IMG/VR virus record: IMGVR_UViG_3300043411_000942
Span: 168,938-232,937 of that record
Direction: 5' to 3' (one strand)
Length of the DNA: 64,000 nucleotides
Shown: positions 2,208-55,762 of the stretch, piece after piece
Layout: every line of letters begins with the position of its first letter
How positions within the stretch are numbered: position 1 is the stretch's first letter
The notes under the pieces: model-generated
The model's input: only the letters and a program-made list of their open reading frames with translations
Databases searched by the model: none
Told to the model about the DNA's origin: nothing
Program-made: the position numbers and the translations under genes

Positions 2208-3428
2208 ATGCTTGAAGTTGAGGTCAGAGGGTTTCAATCGATAGAGCATGTAAAGCTCCAGATTGATGGATTTACCGCACTAACGGGTAGGTCTAACATA
2301 GGTAAGAGTGCGTTCGTGAGGGCTATGAAAGTGGCCCTCACGAACTCAGGTGGAGTTGCCTTTGTTCGACACGCTATCGATTGCGCAAGAGCGCTAAGAG
2401 GAGCCAAAACCTGTAAGTGTCAATCCTCTGTTCATATCGTAGGTGAAGGCTTCGACTTACTGTGGGAAAAGGGGGATGCCGTCAACCGGTATGTGTTCAA
2501 TGGTAACACGTACGATAAACCGGGAGCTGGTACCCCAGATTTCCTTATGTCTAGTGGGTTTGCGCCTGTGAAGATAGGGGGTAACTCCGTACTGATTCAG
2601 GTGTCGGACCAATTTTACCCCATCTTCATGCTAGATCAGTCTGGCCCAGCAGCAGCAGAAGCTATCTCTGATGTGGCTAGCCTAGGTAGGGTAAATAGTG
2701 CTCTACGACTTGTGGAAAAAGATCGTAGAGAGGCTCTCGCTACTCAAAAGGTGCGGGATAAGGACCTAAAGGAGACCCAGGAGCACCTTACGCAATATGT
2801 CGACTTAGACCTAGGTTTGAGTTGTGTAGATGCTGTAGTTCAACAGCTCGCTACCGTAAGGGGGAAGCTCCGAGACCTAGATGAGGTGGATGGGTTCATC
2901 CTTGCCCTACAGGGCATCTCAGATAGGTTAAGGACCATATGGCGAATCAGCTCAGTGGTAACCCCAGAGTCCGAGTCCATCTCAGGTCCCCACCGTAGGC
3001 TGCTACAGATTCAGGAGTTTAACTCGGAGGTTGAGAAGCGAGAGGGTAGCCTAGCCAAACTCCTTCCCCTTCAGGGGCTACTGAACTCGACTAAGCTGGA
3101 TGTTGACTTGACCCTTGGGCATAAGCAATTACGTCAACTTAGTAACTGGGTACTTCGACTTAAGGACCTCAAGTTGAAGTTTGCTAGTCTTGAGCGAGCT
3201 GGAACGACTTGGCAGGGGGTAGGTGCAGCCGACCTTAACCTCTCTGCCCTTAAGCAGCTCCAGCAATTTCAAGTGAAGTTGGCCAGCCTACAGAAGACTA
3301 TTGCAGACATCGAAGCTCAAGTGTCTAACCTCGATCAAGTGGAGGTCGGGTTGCAGGCTGAGTTGGATGAAATAGGGGCGTGCCCAACCTGCCTACAAGC
3401 TATTCACGGAGAGCACCACCATGCCTAG
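2208..3428 (+). CDS. SbcC/Rad50-like ATPase, N-terminal half (Walker A, Q-loop, coiled coil, Zn hook)
   Basis: VRGFQSI, GRSNIGKS Walker A, DQF Q-loop, long coiled coil ending in CPTC; no Walker B in this ORF. Confidence 0.85.
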   Translation: MLEVEVRGFQSIEHVKLQIDGFTALTGRSNIGKSAFVRAMKVALTNSGGVAFVRHAIDCARALRGAKTCKCQSSVHIVGEGFDLLWEKGDAVNRYVFNGNTYDKPGAGTPDFLMSSGFAPVKIGGNSVLIQVSDQFYPIFMLDQSGPAAAEAISDVASLGRVNSALRLVEKDRREALATQKVRDKDLKETQEHLTQYVDLDLGLSCVDAVVQQLATVRGKLRDLDEVDGFILALQGISDRLRTIWRISSVVTPESESISGPHRRLLQIQEFNSEVEKREGSLAKLLPLQGLLNSTKLDVDLTLGHKQLRQLSNWVLRLKDLKLKFASLERAGTTWQGVGAADLNLSALKQLQQFQVKLASLQKTIADIEAQVSNLDQVEVGLQAELDEIGACPTCLQAIHGEHHHA

Positions 3429-4398
3429 GGTTGCATTTGTATGTAGGACTGACACTCACTTGTCAGATCGAAGCCCCATTTCCTGGAAGGCCGACTACCC
3501 AATGGAGGTGTGGTCTAGCCTAGAGCAGGTAGGAGCCCTGGCTAAGAAGTGGGAAGCTAACGCTGTCCTGGATGCAGGGGATTACTTCCACGTAAAGGCT
3601 GCTACAAAGAATCCGCATCGACTAGTGGAGCGCTCTGCCAGGCTGCATCAAGGGTACTCATGTCCTACGTTCTGTGTGGAGGGTAATCACGACATAGCCT
3701 ACAACAACCTTGATACGCTCGCGGATCAGCCGCTTGGGGTACTGTACGCCACGAAGGTGTTCCAGCACCTGCGGGAGGAAGTCTTCCGAGATGGGAACTT
3801 ACAGGTCCGTGTGGTCGGGGTTCCCTACAGTCCGGTTCGTAAGCTGAGTGAGTTGTTGCAGATCCAAAAAAAGCCTGGAGATACTCACCTTATTGCCGTA
3901 GTTCACACGCTAGCATCGAAGACCCCTCCACCTCAAGTCGAGGACTTCTGGAACGAGCCAGTCTTCTCCTACGAGTCTCTAGTGAGTAGGAATGGGCCAG
4001 ATTGCTGGGTATTTGGGCATTGGCACAAGGATCAGGGTGTCGAAGAGATCTCAGGGGTAAAGTTCGTGAACAATGGTGCCCTATCGAGAGGTGCGCTCGT
4101 TCGAGAGAACCTAACTAGGATCCCTAAAGCCTCCATCATCGAGATCGATAACGGCAAGCTATCTGTCACGTCCTCTCTAATTTCCGTGGCGTCCGCTGAA
4201 GACGTGTTCGACTTGGAGCGAAAAGCTACTCAAGAGCGAGAACGTAAAGATATCGAGCAGTTTGTTCTACAGTTGATGATGAAGGGTGCTATTGACCCTA
4301 CGTCTAGCATCGAGGAGAACATTCGAACGCTTGGTTTTGCAGATGAGGTTCGGGATGCTGCTCTACGCTACTTTGAACTTGTTGACACAGTGGGGTAA
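3421..4398 (+). CDS. SbcD/Mre11-like metallophosphoesterase nuclease
   Basis: TDTHL, AGDYFH, EGNHD, FGHWH phosphoesterase motifs; overlaps the SbcC-N gene. Confidence 0.9.
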   Translation: MPRVAFVCRTDTHLSDRSPISWKADYPMEVWSSLEQVGALAKKWEANAVLDAGDYFHVKAATKNPHRLVERSARLHQGYSCPTFCVEGNHDIAYNNLDTLADQPLGVLYATKVFQHLREEVFRDGNLQVRVVGVPYSPVRKLSELLQIQKKPGDTHLIAVVHTLASKTPPPQVEDFWNEPVFSYESLVSRNGPDCWVFGHWHKDQGVEEISGVKFVNNGALSRGALVRENLTRIPKASIIEIDNGKLSVTSSLISVASAEDVFDLERKATQERERKDIEQFVLQLMMKGAIDPTSSIEENIRTLGFADEVRDAALRYFELVDTVG

Positions 4399-49122: not shown

Positions 49123-49719
49123 ATGGCTGATCATGCGGTTGACGCAACTTTAGCGGGAGATTCCACTCAGGTGGCGGATGCGGTCATGCTATATGCTGGA
49201 GGGGCAGTAGCTGTAACTGGAGCGGCTGACCTTGTAGCTCCTAACCTACTCTGGGAACTAGGTACAACGCCTCTAGTAGGCGATGCCTCCGTGGCATCGG
49301 ACTTCATTCTTTCTCTTGCAATTGACTCCTCCTTCGGGGGTGGGGCAGACGTCACGGCCCCAAATCTACTTGCATGTATGGATGCCACCCTTACGGGTGG
49401 GGCTGACCTGACTGCCTCCTTCACAATTCTTTTGAGTGCTGCTCTACTCGCAGACGGCTCAGGTTTGACTGTTGGAGACCTACTCACTATCTATGGAGTT
49501 AGTGCGGCATTGGAAGGTGTCGCAGACTTCCCTCAGGTCGAGCTAACTCTGATGGCACACCCTGGGACAGTGGCTACTAAGCCCATTGCAAACTCGGGAG
49601 CCACTCTTCAACAATTCATTGATGCGACTGGCTCTAGTAAGGCTTCTCAGAAAACTCAGCCCGTTAGCCACCCTGTGGTCGACCCAAACCCACCCAAGAA
49701 ACCTTTTGCACCACGTTAA
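49123..49719 (+). CDS. Ala/Gly/Asp-rich repeat virion protein
   Basis: M.DHAVDA.L.GD N-terminus shared with 50270; repeated L.G.AD units. Confidence 0.7.
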   Translation: MADHAVDATLAGDSTQVADAVMLYAGGAVAVTGAADLVAPNLLWELGTTPLVGDASVASDFILSLAIDSSFGGGADVTAPNLLACMDATLTGGADLTASFTILLSAALLADGSGLTVGDLLTIYGVSAALEGVADFPQVELTLMAHPGTVATKPIANSGATLQQFIDATGSSKASQKTQPVSHPVVDPNPPKKPFAPR

Positions 49720-50269: not shown

Positions 50270-51355
50270 GTGGTTGATCATGCTGTCGATGCGAGCCTTC
50301 TTGGGGATGCTTCGGTAACCTCTGAGGCAGTTGCCATTTACGCCCTAGCCTCCTCCCCTACAGGGGATGCTACTCTTGGGGTAGTAGACCCTACTATTCA
50401 ATGGGCACTTGGGTCATCTCTTGCAGGAGATGCTACTCTTGGAGTAGTAGACCCTACCGTACAGTGGGCGCTTAATGCCTCCTTAGATGGAAGTGCTGAC
50501 GTTCTGATCATTCAGAATTTCCATGCAGTAGATGCTACACTTAGCGGGGATGCCGCACTAACAGCTAGCCTTACTGCTCAATGGGCGTTGGGTACATTGT
50601 CCCTCGATGCCGGAGCCACCCTTGGTGTAGTGGACCCTACAATCCAATGGGCGGTCGCAGCGACCCTTCTTGCAGATGGCACACTAGGGGTTGTAGACCC
50701 TACCCTACAAGGCGCCTTGGCCGCTACTCTATCGGGAGACGCCACCGTAACCTCTGATCTTGCCGGACAGTATCCGCTTGTCGTAACGTTCGCTGGGTCT
50801 GGGGACTTTGTTGCGACAATCCTACAGAACCCACTATTCGCAAGCCTAGATGCGTCTGCGGACCTGACAGCAGTACCTACCATGGTACTCTCCCCTTCGG
50901 CAATCCTGATTGGAGATGCATCGGTCACCTCCGCCCTGAACGTTTTCGTGGGTCCGGTTACAGCTCTGCGCTACGGGGTCCCAAGTAGGCGAGCTGAGGC
51001 GTCCAAGGTAGTCTTCGATCAACTAGACTTGTTCCTTGCAGACGGTAAGACTAGGGCCCAAGATGTTCCTGTCTCAGCTCTCTACCTCAGAGTCTACGTC
51101 AATGGTACACAGGCTGACTGGCCCTTGGTGTCAGGGGCTGGAGTCACGGATGTGCAGATCGCTGCGGGTAAGGTCTACTGGACGGAGTTCTCTACCGGGT
51201 TCTACAGTGTTCGATTCTTCCCCAACCAGATCGGTATCTGGCGGGTAATCCTGACCTACCCAATCTACGACCAAGCTGTATCGCTAAGCTATGATGTGGT
51301 ACCTCAAGTTGGGTTCCCAGGTGGTCTAGGTCTAAGGTCTTCTTTCATAGGTTGA
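50270..51355 (+). CDS. Repeat-rich virion protein
   Basis: Four TLGVVDPT(I/V/L)Q(W/G)A units; paralog of 49123. Confidence 0.75.
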   Translation: MVDHAVDASLLGDASVTSEAVAIYALASSPTGDATLGVVDPTIQWALGSSLAGDATLGVVDPTVQWALNASLDGSADVLIIQNFHAVDATLSGDAALTASLTAQWALGTLSLDAGATLGVVDPTIQWAVAATLLADGTLGVVDPTLQGALAATLSGDATVTSDLAGQYPLVVTFAGSGDFVATILQNPLFASLDASADLTAVPTMVLSPSAILIGDASVTSALNVFVGPVTALRYGVPSRRAEASKVVFDQLDLFLADGKTRAQDVPVSALYLRVYVNGTQADWPLVSGAGVTDVQIAAGKVYWTEFSTGFYSVRFFPNQIGIWRVILTYPIYDQAVSLSYDVVPQVGFPGGLGLRSSFIG

Positions 51356-51361
51356 GGGGAA

Positions 51362-51553
51362 ATGTCACATCAACTATTACAGGTCATTGATTGCGAGCAA
51401 ACAAGGGAAATTCGGTATGTGGATAACACCTTGATACCTAGCAGTCATATCAACAACTTCTTAAAGGTGATCAGCCCATCCGGTAAGGAGTACACTCTTC
51501 AGTGCTCAGAGGACCTCCTTGAGGAGTTGTTCCCAAGCCCAGTAGAGACTTGA
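51362..51553 (+). CDS. Small hypothetical protein
   Basis: GAGGGG RBS; 63 aa. Confidence 0.5.
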   Translation: MSHQLLQVIDCEQTREIRYVDNTLIPSSHINNFLKVISPSGKEYTLQCSEDLLEELFPSPVET

Positions 51554-51586
51554 TGCTCACCCTAGCCAACAAGGAATGGTAACTCT

Positions 51587-52066
51587 ATGGCCTTCCCAGG
51601 AGTGTTCAAACGAGGCTATATCTTCCAAAGAGGAGATCTACCTCTCTTCATTACGGACTCTAGTGGGAATGCGACCAACCCTTACAAGGTGACGTTCACT
51701 CTCTACTACCGTGCAGGTAATAGTCCGTGTGAGCTTCAGGTTGGACCTATAGACCGAACCCCCGTTCAAGCTAAGATTGGGGAGTACTATGTCTCTGGGG
51801 TTGCTGGGGAGTGCGGTCAGCCGGGCCAGTGGTACGTAGAGTGGAAGTACCAGGAGTCTTTCGGGTCTCAGTGGGTGTCCGATAAGATGGGGTTCAGTGT
51901 GTTTGAGACGACCCAATTCGCACCAGTAACCTACACAAGTTACCCTTGCGGCTGTGGAAACTCTTCGGGATGTGGATGCACGATTGCCAACCCCCGTGGA
52001 GGGTGTCAGTGGGGCTGTCGAAACTCTTGTCTCCAAGTGTCCTCTTGCGGAAAGTATGGGTGGTGA
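51587..52066 (+). CDS. Virion protein with Cys/Gly-rich tail; paralog of the 52070 N-extein
   Basis: RG....R.DL.LF.T..SG...N, RTP.....GEYY and W..QE..G are shared with 52070. Confidence 0.7.
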   Translation: MAFPGVFKRGYIFQRGDLPLFITDSSGNATNPYKVTFTLYYRAGNSPCELQVGPIDRTPVQAKIGEYYVSGVAGECGQPGQWYVEWKYQESFGSQWVSDKMGFSVFETTQFAPVTYTSYPCGCGNSSGCGCTIANPRGGCQWGCRNSCLQVSSCGKYGW

Positions 52067-52069
52067 GTC

Positions 52070-52549
52070 ATGGGCGTAGGTCTTCTTAGGGGTCAGCAGT
52101 TGGGTAGGGAGGACTTGAACCTTTTCCTGACCAATGCTTCCGGACACCCCGTCAATGCAGCAGAGATAAGCTACGCTATCTACGACTTCACTACTGGACT
52201 AGAGGTCTTGGTTGGGAGCAATCAGCGAACCCCTCTAAATCCAACAGTAGGGGAGTACTACGCGAGTATCATTATCCCTTTGGATGCGAACTTGGGTGAG
52301 TACCGTATACGTTGGGCAATCCAAGAGCTAATTGGTGGCCCACTCCAGACCGTAGTTCAAGAGTTTAGCGTTCAAGACCGAGATATGGTCATGCCAACGT
52401 GCTTCACTCCTACTCAAACAGACCTGATTCGCAGATTGCGAATGGTTCTCAGAGACCAGTGTGTCGGAGGTGAGGAGCTTGTTGAGTTAGATGTGGATGG
52501 TGAACTTATGCTTGTTAGATTGGACGAGCTTTGGGGGGCTATTCAGTGA
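52070..52549 (+). CDS. N-terminal part of a fractured virion (neck/head-completion-like) gene: 130-aa N-extein + IntN
   Basis: Ends LRDQ|CVGGEELVELDVDGELMLVRLDELWGAIQ*, an intein block A-like segment. Confidence 0.85.
   Translation: MGVGLLRGQQLGREDLNLFLTNASGHPVNAAEISYAIYDFTTGLEVLVGSNQRTPLNPTVGEYYASIIIPLDANLGEYRIRWAIQELIGGPLQTVVQEFSVQDRDMVMPTCFTPTQTDLIRRLRMVLRDQCVGGEELVELDVDGELMLVRLDELWGAIQ
52460..52546 (+). mobile_element. Split intein N-fragment (29 aa)
   Basis: Cys1 with C-h-x-G-E-x-x-V pattern and v.l.EL(W) motif; 8 acidic residues versus 1 basic. Confidence 0.8.
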
Positions 52550-53433
52550 CGGTTCTCCTCCAATTATTGGCAAAGCATGGTATCAGTTTAGATGCCTTCG
52601 TAAAGAAAGGTCGTCCCCCACTGGGAGTTAGGGAGAAGAGGGCTTTAATTGTCACGGAGCTACACCTATCTGGGTACTCTTGGGCCGAGATGTGTCAAAT
52701 CACTGGATTAGGTAATGCTGCTATTCAGAACCTATCTAGAGCAAAGGGGTGCGCTGCGGTAGTTAGAAAACGCAAGGAACTAGGTAGGAATGTTGGGTTG
52801 TCTTGGGCTGGTAATACAAGACCAGGTCAGTTAGAGAAGCAGTGGGCTAGAGGGGATTTCGACCGGCTTAGGGGCCGTATTAGACCAAAAGAAGAGAGAG
52901 CAGCTTTAGTTCGTGGTTGGACTCCAGAGAAACGAGCAGCAGCGTCAGTACGAAGTTTGAAGTTATGGCAAAGTCCAAAAGTTAGGGGTCACCTATTAGG
53001 TTTTCACCGTGACCCACTTGAGCGTAGTAGACGATCGAAGTTGCAAGTTGTGCGCATGCTCCAAACTCCTACAACCTACCTAAGGGGTAAGTTTGATTGG
53101 GTACCTACCCCAAAAGGGATAAGCTCCAAAGCAAGAGTTCGGTCGTCCTATGAAGCTGCGGCAATATCTGTACTTGAGGCTGATGTAACGGTAGCTAAGT
53201 ACAGCTATGAGTTAGTCTTTATGGTTGAAGGTGGTAGGTGGATAATACCCGACTTCCTTGTAGAGTACTCAACTGGAATTACAACTCTAGTTGAGGTAAA
53301 AGCGTCTTGGGTTTTGAGTCTGCCGAGTGATCACAAGGTTAAGCAAAGACTTGAGTTATCCCGTCGACTAGCTGAGCAGAACAACTGGCACTTCGAGATT
53401 TGGACAGAAAAGGAGCTGCGTAATGCTCTCTGA
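52546..53433 (+). CDS. Free-standing TnsA-like PD-(D/E)XK endonuclease between the intein halves
   Basis: Start moved to GTG 52546 (GTGA overlap); N-terminal HTH, basic linker, RSSYE, PDFLVEY, LVEVKA, W.FEIWTEKEL. Confidence 0.8.
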   Translation: MTVLLQLLAKHGISLDAFVKKGRPPLGVREKRALIVTELHLSGYSWAEMCQITGLGNAAIQNLSRAKGCAAVVRKRKELGRNVGLSWAGNTRPGQLEKQWARGDFDRLRGRIRPKEERAALVRGWTPEKRAAASVRSLKLWQSPKVRGHLLGFHRDPLERSRRSKLQVVRMLQTPTTYLRGKFDWVPTPKGISSKARVRSSYEAAAISVLEADVTVAKYSYELVFMVEGGRWIIPDFLVEYSTGITTLVEVKASWVLSLPSDHKVKQRLELSRRLAEQNNWHFEIWTEKELRNAL

Positions 53434-53818
53434 TATACAACGAAGTAGGGTAAGGGCGGCCTTTACTGTAGGAAAGCTCAAGGTCAGATCCGTATCCCCT
53501 AGCGGGAGTATGGAATGGAAACGGGTTGTTGATGTGCAACGAGCTGAAGTCCCATGGGAGACTATCTACGAAGTAAGCTCAGACTTAGGATCAATGGTTT
53601 TGACTAGTGGTCACCGAGTTTTCACTTCTCCTGTAACCAAGACGGAAACTTCGAAACTTTGCCATGGGGTAAGATTACTGTCCGTGGTAGGCAGTTTAGT
53701 TAGTTCCTCAACCGTGGTAAGTGTGCAACAGATTGCTAGCCGACAGTTCATGTACGACTTAACAGCTGAAGATTGGCATAACTTTGTGCTATTTAGGTCT
53801 AAGAGTGTCATTAGCAAC
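53423..53818 (+). mobile_element. Split intein C-fragment (132 aa, no endonuclease domain)
   Basis: Has blocks B, F and G but no block A; terminal Asn followed by Ser. Confidence 0.85.
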
Positions 53819-54319
53819 TCCCCTGACAAGTTTTACAAGTTCCGGCCTCCAGCTCATGAGGAAACGGTCAACCAATTCAGTCGGGTGTTTGGTTATATCT
53901 GGGAGGACGCAGAGTTGCTAGAGTATCTTGAGAGGTCTCTAGACATGATCATTGCGTCCCCTCCTAGGACCCCATTCAATGGCATTGACCAGATGACTCA
54001 GATCCGACCAGAGTGGAGGACGCTCCTCATCACGGGTGGGATGTTCTGGGCACTTCAAGCCCTGCAAATTAACTGGACGGCAGATGAGTTCTCGTACTCG
54101 ATCGGCGGGATCTCCCTAGACTTAGACAAGTCAAGTAAGTATGACACCCTGAAACAAGGTGCAAGCGACCAGTTCGATAAGCAACTTGAGAAGGCCAAAG
54201 CGACCGTCAAGTTCATCAAGGGGCTACAGCAGCCTAAGTACGGGATGGGCGTGCGCAGCGCCTTCGGCCCGTTCCAAAGTAGGGGCGCTATATCTCCGCG
54301 AAAATTCATGGGAATTTAG
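53423..54319 (+). CDS. C-terminal part of the fractured gene: 132-aa IntC + 166-aa C-extein
   Basis: AGGAG RBS; block B LTSGHRVF, block F MYDLTAEDWHNFVL, block G VISN|S; extein SPDKFYKFRPP...DEFSYSIGGISLDLDKSSKY. Confidence 0.88.
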   Translation: MLSDIQRSRVRAAFTVGKLKVRSVSPSGSMEWKRVVDVQRAEVPWETIYEVSSDLGSMVLTSGHRVFTSPVTKTETSKLCHGVRLLSVVGSLVSSSTVVSVQQIASRQFMYDLTAEDWHNFVLFRSKSVISNSPDKFYKFRPPAHEETVNQFSRVFGYIWEDAELLEYLERSLDMIIASPPRTPFNGIDQMTQIRPEWRTLLITGGMFWALQALQINWTADEFSYSIGGISLDLDKSSKYDTLKQGASDQFDKQLEKAKATVKFIKGLQQPKYGMGVRSAFGPFQSRGAISPRKFMGI

Positions 54320-54337: not shown

Positions 54338-54366
54338 TTGACTTTTCCGTTGTGCCGATCCATACT
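54338..54366 (+). promoter_or_regulatory. Sigma70-type promoter, leaderless, for the downstream endonuclease
   Basis: TTGACT-17 nt-CATACT; ATG 54374 follows 7 nt later. Confidence 0.6.
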
Positions 54367-54373
54367 TAGGTCA

Positions 54374-55762
54374 ATGCCAAATAAGGGTCGTTGTGCCTGT
54401 CCTGCGTGTGGGAAGAACCTAGCCCCAAAGAGTATTCACGCTCACACTCTTGAGTGCGTTGATTGGAAGACAAAGTACGGTGACCCGTACCCGTACTTCA
54501 AGTTCAATGGTACCCCACACCAATACTCTGACGTAGCTCAGGAGGGCATTGACTATGTTCGATGTCGAGTGTGTCTTGAGTATGGGTGGGACTTTCGGTT
54601 CAAGCGCATGATGGATCACCTTAAAGGGGTCCACGGTCTTAGTGAGGCTCAGTATCTGCTGAGGTTCCCTGCGGCTCTAGTAAGGTTGCAGTCTACCCTA
54701 AGTAAGAGGCAGGGAACGGTACAGGGTAGGTTTGGAGTTAGTAACGTTTTTCAAGCTGACGTAGTTAAAGCTAAGTCCAAAGCTTCTTTGCTTGAGCGTC
54801 ATGGGGTAACCAGTCCGATTCAAGCTAGTTCGGTACGAGCAAAGATCGATGCTACGAATCTTGCTCGTTACGGGGTGACTAACCCTTTTGCCTCCTCAGA
54901 GGTGAAACAACGCATTCGAGCCACCAACCTAGAGCGATTCGGCGTCGAGAACCCTAACCAAGCTCCTGAAATTATACAACAACGTATAGCTACTAACCAG
55001 GAGCGGTACGGTGCAGATCACTATCTTGAGACTCCCGAGTTCAAAGAGAAGTTCAAGGCAACTTCTTTGGAGAGGTACGGCACTGTGCATCCTATGCAGT
55101 CCCCAGAGGGTAGGTTACCTTGTGAGACTAGTATGCTTGCTAGTCTTGGTGTTACCTACCCATTTCGATCTGATGCTGTACAAAGTAAGGCCTACGCAAC
55201 ATCCGTTGCGAACCATGGGGGGCAGCACCATCTCTCAGACCCAGCAATCATTGAGGCACGGAAGCAGCACCTAATGGAGCTTTACGGAGTTGACAACATC
55301 TCTAAGGTACCAGCGGTTAAAGAGAGGATCATCGCCAAGATTAAGGAGCGGTTTCGAGACGGAGCTATCCCACGAATTACGACTCCAGAGAGGGTATTTA
55401 GAGACCTTGTACCTGAGCGTGTGGTGTATTCTGGGGACTTTGAGTACTGGGTAACGTGGGCAAATGGGAGACGTAAGAATCCTGACTTTGTGGTACTAAC
55501 CGAGGAGCAGTACGCAGCGTATAGGGCTGGGGTCCCTTTGGGAGACCTACGGACCTACCTTGTGGTTGAGGTCAATGGTGTTTGGTGGCATACTAAGCAC
55601 AAGAACATGACGCGCGAGGCTAGGGAGAAAGAGTTTGTAGACGGCTACGCTTCAGTTGGTGTGAGTTGTTTGGTTGTTTGGGAGGACGATCTAGAAACCA
55701 AACCAGAGTCTATTCAGCAGCAGGTCAGCGCGTTTCTTGTGCAACCGAAGGTTAGAGGTTAA
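54374..55762 (+). CDS. Homing-endonuclease-like protein: Zn fingers, (Y/F)GV.NP repeats, Vsr/DUF559-like nuclease
   Basis: CxxC..H...C and CxxC...H...H fingers; repeats such as TNLERFGVENP; C-terminal NPDF, VEVNGVWWH, LVVWEDDL. Confidence 0.8.
   Translation: MPNKGRCACPACGKNLAPKSIHAHTLECVDWKTKYGDPYPYFKFNGTPHQYSDVAQEGIDYVRCRVCLEYGWDFRFKRMMDHLKGVHGLSEAQYLLRFPAALVRLQSTLSKRQGTVQGRFGVSNVFQADVVKAKSKASLLERHGVTSPIQASSVRAKIDATNLARYGVTNPFASSEVKQRIRATNLERFGVENPNQAPEIIQQRIATNQERYGADHYLETPEFKEKFKATSLERYGTVHPMQSPEGRLPCETSMLASLGVTYPFRSDAVQSKAYATSVANHGGQHHLSDPAIIEARKQHLMELYGVDNISKVPAVKERIIAKIKERFRDGAIPRITTPERVFRDLVPERVVYSGDFEYWVTWANGRRKNPDFVVLTEEQYAAYRAGVPLGDLRTYLVVEVNGVWWHTKHKNMTREAREKEFVDGYASVGVSCLVVWEDDLETKPESIQQQVSAFLVQPKVRG

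Follow-up and report, generated by a model that had tools for sequence, protein, structure and literature searches.

The DNA analysed here (the window, 64,000 nucleotides, with positions counted from its first letter) is the last 64 kb of IMG/VR virus record IMGVR_UViG_3300043411_000942, that is, positions 168,938 to 232,937 of a record 232,937 bp long whose estimated completeness is about one half and which is therefore of huge-phage origin. After its codon 130, a conserved gene of the window, tentatively assigned to the neck or adaptor proteins of the virion, is interrupted by the two pieces of a split intein, and the gene of a TnsA-like PD-(D/E)XK nuclease lies between these pieces. The locus is a "fractured gene" whose intein is broken at the atypical S1 split position. 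We infer cleavage of the target and splicing of the protein, and consider it likely that the nuclease is a homing endonuclease which mobilises the whole 1359-bp unit. The N-terminal and C-terminal intein pieces are called IntN and IntC, lengths are given in amino acids (aa), and the features of the locus are the following:

52460-53818, + strand: whole mobile cassette (IntN, nuclease gene and IntC), 1359 bp, exactly the stretch absent from related locus L003
52070-52459, + strand: N-extein, first 130 aa of a virion protein of about 296 aa, ending in LRDQ; joined to the C-extein in 42 intein-less loci
52460-52549, + strand: IntN, 29 aa (CVGGEELVELDVDGELMLVRLDELWGAIQ), block A only, then a TGA stop (codons 52460-52546 plus the stop)
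52546-53433, + strand: free-standing TnsA-like PD-(D/E)XK nuclease gene, 295 aa, putative homing endonuclease (PF08722, fold match)
52546-53094, + strand: N-terminal half of the nuclease, a helix-turn-helix (HTH, residues 28-63) and a long basic helical region (70-178), from the AlphaFold2 (AF2) secondary structure
53095-53418, + strand: catalytic core of the nuclease, residues 184-291, aligning with TnsA residues 40-167
53152-53154, 53251-53253, 53293-53295 and 53299-53301, + strand: catalytic codons E203, D236, E250 and K252, respectively, read from the sequence
53423-53818, + strand: IntC, 132 aa, block B (TSGH), blocks F and G and terminal Asn; profile matches solved inteins
53819-54319, + strand: C-extein, 166 aa and stop, starting with SPDK; +1 residue Ser

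The upstream open reading frame (ORF; 52070-52549) encodes the first 130 aa of the host protein up to LRDQ and runs on into IntN (CVGGEE...AIQ) before its stop codon, while the downstream ORF (53423-54319) starts with IntC, carries block B as LTSGHRVF, ends the intein with VISN and resumes the host protein at SPDK. The host gene is broken into these two ORFs at a single codon, after LRDQ, and 42 uninterrupted alleles are found in relatives. Complementary intein motifs are distributed over the two ORFs, with Cys1 and block A on the first and block B, blocks F/G, the terminal Asn and the +1 nucleophile on the second. A profile built from 13 IntC pieces matches solved inteins (2jmz with 1.3e-6, as well as the RadA and CDC21 inteins), and the break aligns with a loop of contiguous relatives, after the first ~30 intein residues. 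It is the known S1 position, just after block A, in a class-1 intein. A reading made earlier from the letters of this DNA (the sequence-only reading) had placed the nuclease exactly at the split point, as it is found here, and had called the split site unusual; the position is indeed atypical, but both the site and the gene arrangement are of kinds already known (PMC2677866). Pfam searches at E up to 1 returned no LAGLIDADG, HNH or GIY-YIG domain in the intein pieces or in the nuclease, which agrees with the earlier statement that the mini-intein has no endonuclease of its own.

The three ORFs are tightly packed. The GTG start of the nuclease gene overlaps the TGA stop of the upstream ORF (GTGA, 52546-52549; an alternative TTG start at 52531 would give 300 aa), its final 11 nt overlap the ATG of the downstream ORF (53423), which is preceded by AAGGAG, and a promoter and terminator scan found no such site inside the cassette. 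A 2.6-kb contig from a wastewater metatranscriptome library, ~93% identical to the window at 51139-53739, covers the upstream ORF, the nuclease gene and the start of IntC; it is compatible with co-transcription, DNA carry-over being the alternative. Complex prediction for the two host-gene products gave an ipSAE of 0.84 (best control 0.02; the mark set for this score is reached by 51 of 78 solved complexes and by 2 of 108 mismatched pairs), with an agreement between runs of at least 74% of contacts and a partner pLDDT (predicted local distance difference test) of at least 73. The predicted interface joins residues 129-158 of the upstream product with IntC residues 1-65 and 107-133, and the model supports docking of IntN onto IntC, a step ahead of the putative splicing.

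The TnsA-like nuclease

The nuclease carries the motifs RSSYE (E203), PDFLVEY (D236), VEVKA (E250 and K252) and FEIWTEKEL. Against Pfam PF08722 (Tn7_TnsA-like_N) it scores 33.7 bits, above the curated cut-off of 26.5, and the same family is matched by all 33 of its aligned relatives; PHROG 218, annotated as "head closure" and of the gp4 type, is matched with 2.3e-9. A sequence-only search of the PDB retrieved TnsA at E 0.24, a match so weak that a fold search was needed. Since the single-sequence AF2 model reached a pLDDT of only 35, the alignment-based model was used (pLDDT 88.9), which has an alpha/beta core at residues 184-291. Foldseek placed TnsA structures 1t0f and 1f1z at the top of its matches (E 6e-6, probability 1.0), and among Swiss-Prot models TnsA (P13988) was matched over residues 40-167.

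Residues S200, S201, E203, D236, E250, V251 and K252 are invariant in 33 homologues (25-93% identity), and R199 is invariant in the 32-sequence core alignment and at least 90% conserved in the alignment of 33. In the N-terminal half, H40, G43, W46, W100, G103 and F105 are each invariant or at least 90% conserved in the family, and residues 40-68 resemble an HTH repeat; this HTH and helical half is presumed to be the DNA-recognition module. NUMOD3 was not detected by Pfam in the subfamily of the window nuclease. Comparison with L073, a 92%-identical copy, gives a ratio of non-synonymous to synonymous substitutions (dN/dS) of 0.17 for the nuclease and of 0.007-0.066 for the flanking host-gene segments compared. 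The family assignment at 52546-53433, the four named motifs and the HTH with its basic linker, all put forward in the sequence-only reading, are thus borne out by the profile, the fold match and the invariant active site.

Occupied, empty and decayed alleles in related phages

The comparison set comprises 48 fetched viral loci that encode the host protein, and a host-protein tree was built from 49 distinct alleles. Locus L003 matches the window at 97-99% identity in the neighbourhood of the gene and carries the host gene intact, lacking precisely the 1359 bp of window 52460-53818; the flanks of the site are 97.4% identical upstream and 90.6% downstream. The source genome of L003 (G001) has terminal repeats and a length of 379,936 bp, and nothing in the whole of it matches PF08722 or phrog_218. 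In a 529-kb genome rated 100% complete, the intein-embedded copy is the only TnsA/gp4-like gene. The cassette occupies 14 of the 49 alleles, and the nuclease is absent from the remaining loci (35/49). On the host-protein tree occupancy requires at least 11 changes, at least six of them on well-supported branches, where shuffled labels require 12.3 on average; occupancy is as scattered as random labels. The cassette tree is in partial conflict with the host tree (L047+L061 at 97 vs. L047+L062 at 99), and the cassette copies are deeply diverged, with 38-56% identity. All 42 empty alleles have Asn as the +1 residue, and the six tabulated occupied loci have Ser or Cys there (Ser in the window). 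Empty alleles are therefore not simple deletion products, and the +1 codon must move with the cassette.

A second near-identical pair, L044 and L046 (98-99% identical), also differs by the cassette. Upstream of the site the two loci show 0-2 differences per 50 bp over 950 bp, then 12 in the last 50 bp; divergence is ~20% across the 355 bp between this site and a second intein site of the same gene (described below), and it falls to zero within ~300 bp past the split point of the second site. The pattern is one of short conversion tracts around the two insertion points. Together, the 1359-bp difference from L003, the scattered occupancy and the tracts of L044/L046 show that the 1.36-kb cassette is gained and lost as a selfish mobile unit, and the mobility that the sequence-only reading had proposed is upheld. 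Independent wastewater metagenomes contain the occupied allele, and no contig that skips the cassette was found in reads from four runs, hence no sign of both alleles in one sample.

Along window 40001-64000 and its counterpart in the source genome of L003 (G001:C1:212000-238500), blocks of 99-100% identity alternate with blocks of 88-93%, with several indels, and there is a sharp step in divergence near 52058, ~400 bp upstream of the cassette. This step was considered as the edge of a conversion tract and rejected, because the divergence persists over kilobases and mosaicism pervades the genomes; the clean tract is therefore taken from L044/L046 instead.

Nuclease and intein are tightly linked. 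Every close nuclease homologue with readable context (~20 loci, 38-93% identity: L001, L044, L047-49, L054-64, L068, L073, and, judged from its gene layout, the P0002 contig) is flanked by IntN and IntC, always at the same codon. None of the ~20 loci has the nuclease at this position without the intein, an arrangement named beforehand as evidence against homing, and the nuclease was not found in genomes with an empty site. Decayed copies occur in three loci: in L064 only a 92-aa core ORF remains, in L068 there are an internal deletion and a frameshift, and in L048 the gene is divided into two ORFs. A search with IntC gave 53 clusters, in 48 of which the protein begins at IntC residue 1, so that the intein is split there. 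The remaining five have no nuclease and encode N-extein, IntN, IntC and C-extein in a single ORF, with linkers that vary in length and sequence, and the idea that the intein never occurs without the nuclease was overturned by them. With empty, occupied, decaying and nuclease-free alleles all found, every stage of a homing cycle is present. The five contiguous inteins are scattered among split ones on the intein tree (at least three changes are forced; contiguous P0216 pairs with split P0220 at a support of 99), which makes recurrent invasion and recurrent nuclease loss followed by re-fusion equally likely. The earlier proposal that a free-standing nuclease invaded the intein just after block A is accordingly half sustained: nuclease-free contiguous mini-inteins do exist at the same site, but their scatter is explained equally well by loss and re-fusion.

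Some relatives carry a paralogous intein elsewhere in the same host gene, between ADEF and SYSIGG (L044:5277-5750, L047:5283-6661, L046:5358-6313 and L079:3530-3569). It has Ser1 and Ser+1, being cysteine-less at the splice junctions, and relatives of this kind have the host gene in three pieces. L044, L048 and L056 have this second-site intein in contiguous form, and in L047 and L081 a DUF559/Vsr-like nuclease interrupts it at the same structural position; in L045, L046, L049 and L058 there is an insert of about the same size as in L047 and L081, and in L079 the intein is split with nothing between the halves. Compared with the contiguous L044, L046 has a clean 955-bp insert, and past this site the two loci are ~99% identical over 4 kb downstream (~92% in the first ~300 bp). 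Both intein sites of the gene have the same break point, and the S1 loop has thus been employed repeatedly, by two nuclease families.

Regarding the wider setting, blastn of the region against GenBank phages gave no match, and a protein search led to a relative, uncultured phage LR745208.1 (485 kb), further relatives being many IMG/VR contigs of 200-530 kb. The uninterrupted host homologue (~296 aa) has a weak match to PHROG 17327, a head-tail connector (8.9e-4), the language-model neighbours of the host protein include neck and adaptor proteins, and a head-protein gene (phrog_240) lies just upstream. Two genes flank the interrupted gene:

51587-52066, + strand: upstream paralogue of the N-extein domain, 159 aa, ~31% identity to the N-extein (tblastn)
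54338-55762, + strand: free-standing homing-endonuclease-like gene, 474 aa, with DUF7487 repeats and a Vsr-like C-terminus (PF24308, 2.8e-41; PHROG 3339 "homing endonuclease", 2e-31)

The paralogue is context outside the mobile unit, and the tandem pair 51587-52066 and 52070-52459 is retained in many relatives. Further upstream, two Ala/Gly/Asp-rich ORFs (49123-49719 and 50270-51355) are rich in repeats resembling GDATLGVVDPT(I/V)QWA and have no family match; they are probably repeat-bearing virion proteins. In some relatives an ORF of 374-382 aa lies just upstream of the host gene (L001:2316-3440 and L079:1108-2256), with HTH motifs and a C-terminal PDF...ExK-like motif (YLPDFWV...IEDTKG), for which Pfam gives a weak HTH match only; it may be another nuclease-type insert. 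The DUF7487 gene, which begins 19 nt downstream of the host gene, is an independent element outside the cassette and polymorphic among relatives. An 87-kb wastewater contig, otherwise near-identical, departs from the window at 54343 and rejoins it near the end of the DUF7487 ORF.

Proposed mechanism and rival explanations

On the reading that we prefer, a conserved virion gene was interrupted after codon 130 by an S1-split intein, with an endonuclease gene occupying the break. The three overlapping or abutting ORFs probably share one transcript and are coupled in translation; the 29-aa IntN of the first product would dock onto the 132-aa IntC of the third, and trans-splicing would restore the 296-aa host protein with the junction Ser in place of the native Asn. 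During mixed infections the nuclease would cut the uninterrupted allele (LRDQ/NPDK) of related phages, and repair from the occupied allele would copy the 1359-bp cassette together with short flanking tracts that include the +1 codon. After spread, decay and possible loss of the nuclease would leave a contiguous mini-intein or a bare split intein. The TnsA-like protein as maker of the break, the position of its cut and the occurrence of splicing are the steps that we infer, whereas the gene layout, the fold with its conserved active site, the exact presence/absence difference, the scattered occupancy, the local tracts and the decayed copies are observed.

Several observations weigh against this reading. 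The comparators are metagenome assemblies throughout. The five contiguous inteins demonstrate that the intein can persist without the nuclease, the ~10% divergence between the window and L003 extends for kilobases downstream in genomes that are mosaic overall, and the DUF7487 gene is commoner beside occupied alleles (8/13) than beside empty ones (7/35). The divergences of cassette and host correlate (Spearman 0.42), and much of the inheritance is therefore vertical or within close kin. As regards enzymology, Tn7 TnsA cuts one strand only. T4 gp4 has been reported to be a non-specific DNase (PMC7824862), and given both properties, site-specific double-strand cutting is an assumption.

Some of these points lend themselves to other explanations. 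The cassette may be mobile with the break made by another enzyme, either the adjacent DUF7487/Vsr-like protein ("collaborative homing") or general phage recombination, the TnsA-like protein having a different role, such as non-specific DNA processing or exclusion of competing phages. The close proximity of the DUF7487 gene, its enrichment beside occupied alleles, the general mosaicism of the genomes and the reported non-specificity of gp4 relatives (PMC7824862) all speak for this explanation, which we nevertheless hold to be unlikely. L003 carries the DUF7487 gene beside an empty site, so that the DUF7487 enzyme does not target that site, where it would cut its own genome; the cassette occurs without that gene in L044, L047, L049, L064 and L068 and in the X4 contig, from which the gene is largely missing; and the TnsA-like gene was not found apart from the intein among the close homologues. 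Somewhat less probable still is that the nuclease homes only into contiguous nuclease-free inteins, with the S1-loop DNA as its target, and does not mobilise the intein into empty genes. The interspersion of contiguous and split inteins on the intein tree and the clean 955-bp insert at the second site of L044/L046, with ~99% identity beyond it, are what such behaviour would produce; at the first site, however, both the window/L003 and the L044/L046 pairs differ by the whole cassette and not by the nuclease alone, the conversion tract abuts the extein junction, and a mini-intein without a nuclease has no known route of entry into empty alleles.

The sequence-only reading had also raised a domesticated head-completion nuclease of the T4 gp4 type, needed for packaging and merely located inside the intein. 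The PHROG 218 match and the position of the gene in a virion-gene module favour it, but the gene is missing from a phage of 97-99% identity whose 380-kb genome has terminal repeats, and from 35 of the 49 relatives' loci, and its sole copy in the 529-kb genome sits in the intein. It also has a 180-aa DNA-binding extension lacking in the 150-aa gp4 (PMC1189080), and decayed copies are tolerated. On these grounds, namely a dispensable gene, an additional DNA-binding half and tolerated decay, we reject the head-completion role as highly improbable. Least probable in our judgement is that the insertion is old and has been inherited vertically and lost many times independently, the nuclease being an inert relic. 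The correlated divergences and the 38-56% identity of the cassette copies would be expected of such an insertion; the active site is nevertheless invariant with a dN/dS of 0.17, Asn at +1 shows that the empty alleles are no deletion products, occupancy is no more clustered than random labels, and the conversion tracts are local.

Wider family and comparison with known systems

A profile of the nuclease searched against 1.84 billion cluster representatives retrieved 4201 proteins with E ≤ 1e-3, of which 1344 reach E ≤ 1e-10. Second-tier relatives combine PF08722 with NUMOD3 modules, and L066 has zinc-ribbon modules common to HNH endonucleases. At L065:1735-4303, a distant TnsA-like ORF (2710-3660) splits a major-head-protein gene (phrog_138 positions 5-228 and 229-399) and has sub-threshold group I intron matches on both sides (E 3e-4 and 1.7e-5), so that it probably belongs to the same superfamily of nucleases and is carried by an intron. 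The niches of the TnsA-like relatives are accordingly split inteins (this locus), a probable group I intron (L065) and free-standing genes (L066, P0088 and P0133, with NUMOD3 or zinc-ribbon DNA-binding modules), contexts that mirror the argument made for the Vsr-like family (PMC2677866). In the open-access literature we found no paper linking a TnsA-like nuclease with inteins or homing and no published description of such a family; the arrangement and the S1 split are already known, and the new element would be the TnsA-like nuclease in a homing role. Whether TnsA/gp4-like PD-(D/E)XK nucleases form a large family of phage homing endonucleases, with this locus displaying all homing stages for two inteins and two nuclease families, we judge to be evenly balanced.

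If the nuclease of the window does home, another nuclease family would join the few known to drive intein or intron homing, and the natural empty, occupied and decayed alleles make the cleavage claim directly testable. Endonuclease genes appear to have settled at the S1 break point more than once, which bears on the origin and reversion of split inteins. Few natural atypically split inteins are known, and they are wanted for protein semisynthesis (PMC10189870, PMC11923092); for protein engineering, the relatives offer dozens, with IntN of 29-31 aa, and a cysteine-less Ser1/Ser+1 series at the second site. With respect to annotation, TnsA-like phage genes can carry "head closure" or "head completion" labels in error.

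The closest known systems are the fractured genes of Dassa 2009, in which a split intein is accompanied by a free-standing GIY-YIG or Vsr-like nuclease (PMC2677866); an HNH case is known from the PolB of a jumbo phage (PMC6892783). As in the fractured genes, a phage gene lies in two ORFs with the intein halves at the break and a nuclease ORF between them in overlapping frames, and both come from environmental phage DNA. Unlike them, the nuclease here is TnsA-like (PF08722), the host is a neck/adaptor-like virion protein and not a DNA-metabolism enzyme or terminase, and the alleles observed include empty, occupied, decayed and re-fused ones. The intein shares with other S1-split inteins, which have been reviewed or reported in PMC11923092 and PMC10189870, a short IntN (15-30 aa) that is limited to block A, and a long IntC with the remaining motifs, a likeness of architecture (29 and 132 aa here); among them are PolB16 OarG (PMC10189870) and one terminase intein of the fractured-gene study, broken after motif N1 (PMC2677866). 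It differs from these in that two paralogous inteins of one gene share the break point and involve two nuclease families.

With Tn7 TnsA (1f1z, 1t0f) the nuclease shares the fold of the catalytic domain and the E...D...(Q/E)xK site; it lacks the TnsA C-terminal domain, the match covering TnsA residues 40-167, and has an N-terminal HTH/helical extension instead. No TnsB/TnsC-like gene is present among the adjacent ORFs, which are the intein halves, although no dedicated search for TnsB/TnsC or transposon ends was made. T4 gp4, a TnsA-like head-completion nuclease (PMC1189080, PMC7824862), has a homologous core (PHROG 218) and is likewise found in large phages; it is a core packaging gene of ~150 aa with no extra domain, whereas the nuclease described here has 295 aa, is dispensable and is strictly tied to the intein. 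Finally, the Vsr-like/EDxHD enzymes (I-Bth0305I, PMC3239194) and the PD-(D/E)XK enzyme I-Ssp6803I are also nucleases of the restriction-enzyme fold recruited to homing. The niches of the Vsr-like/EDxHD enzymes, in fractured genes, in group I introns and as free-standing genes, are the same three as those of the relatives of the TnsA-like nuclease, which belongs to a different branch of the fold and is assigned by Pfam to the TnsA-like family and not to Vsr or DUF559.

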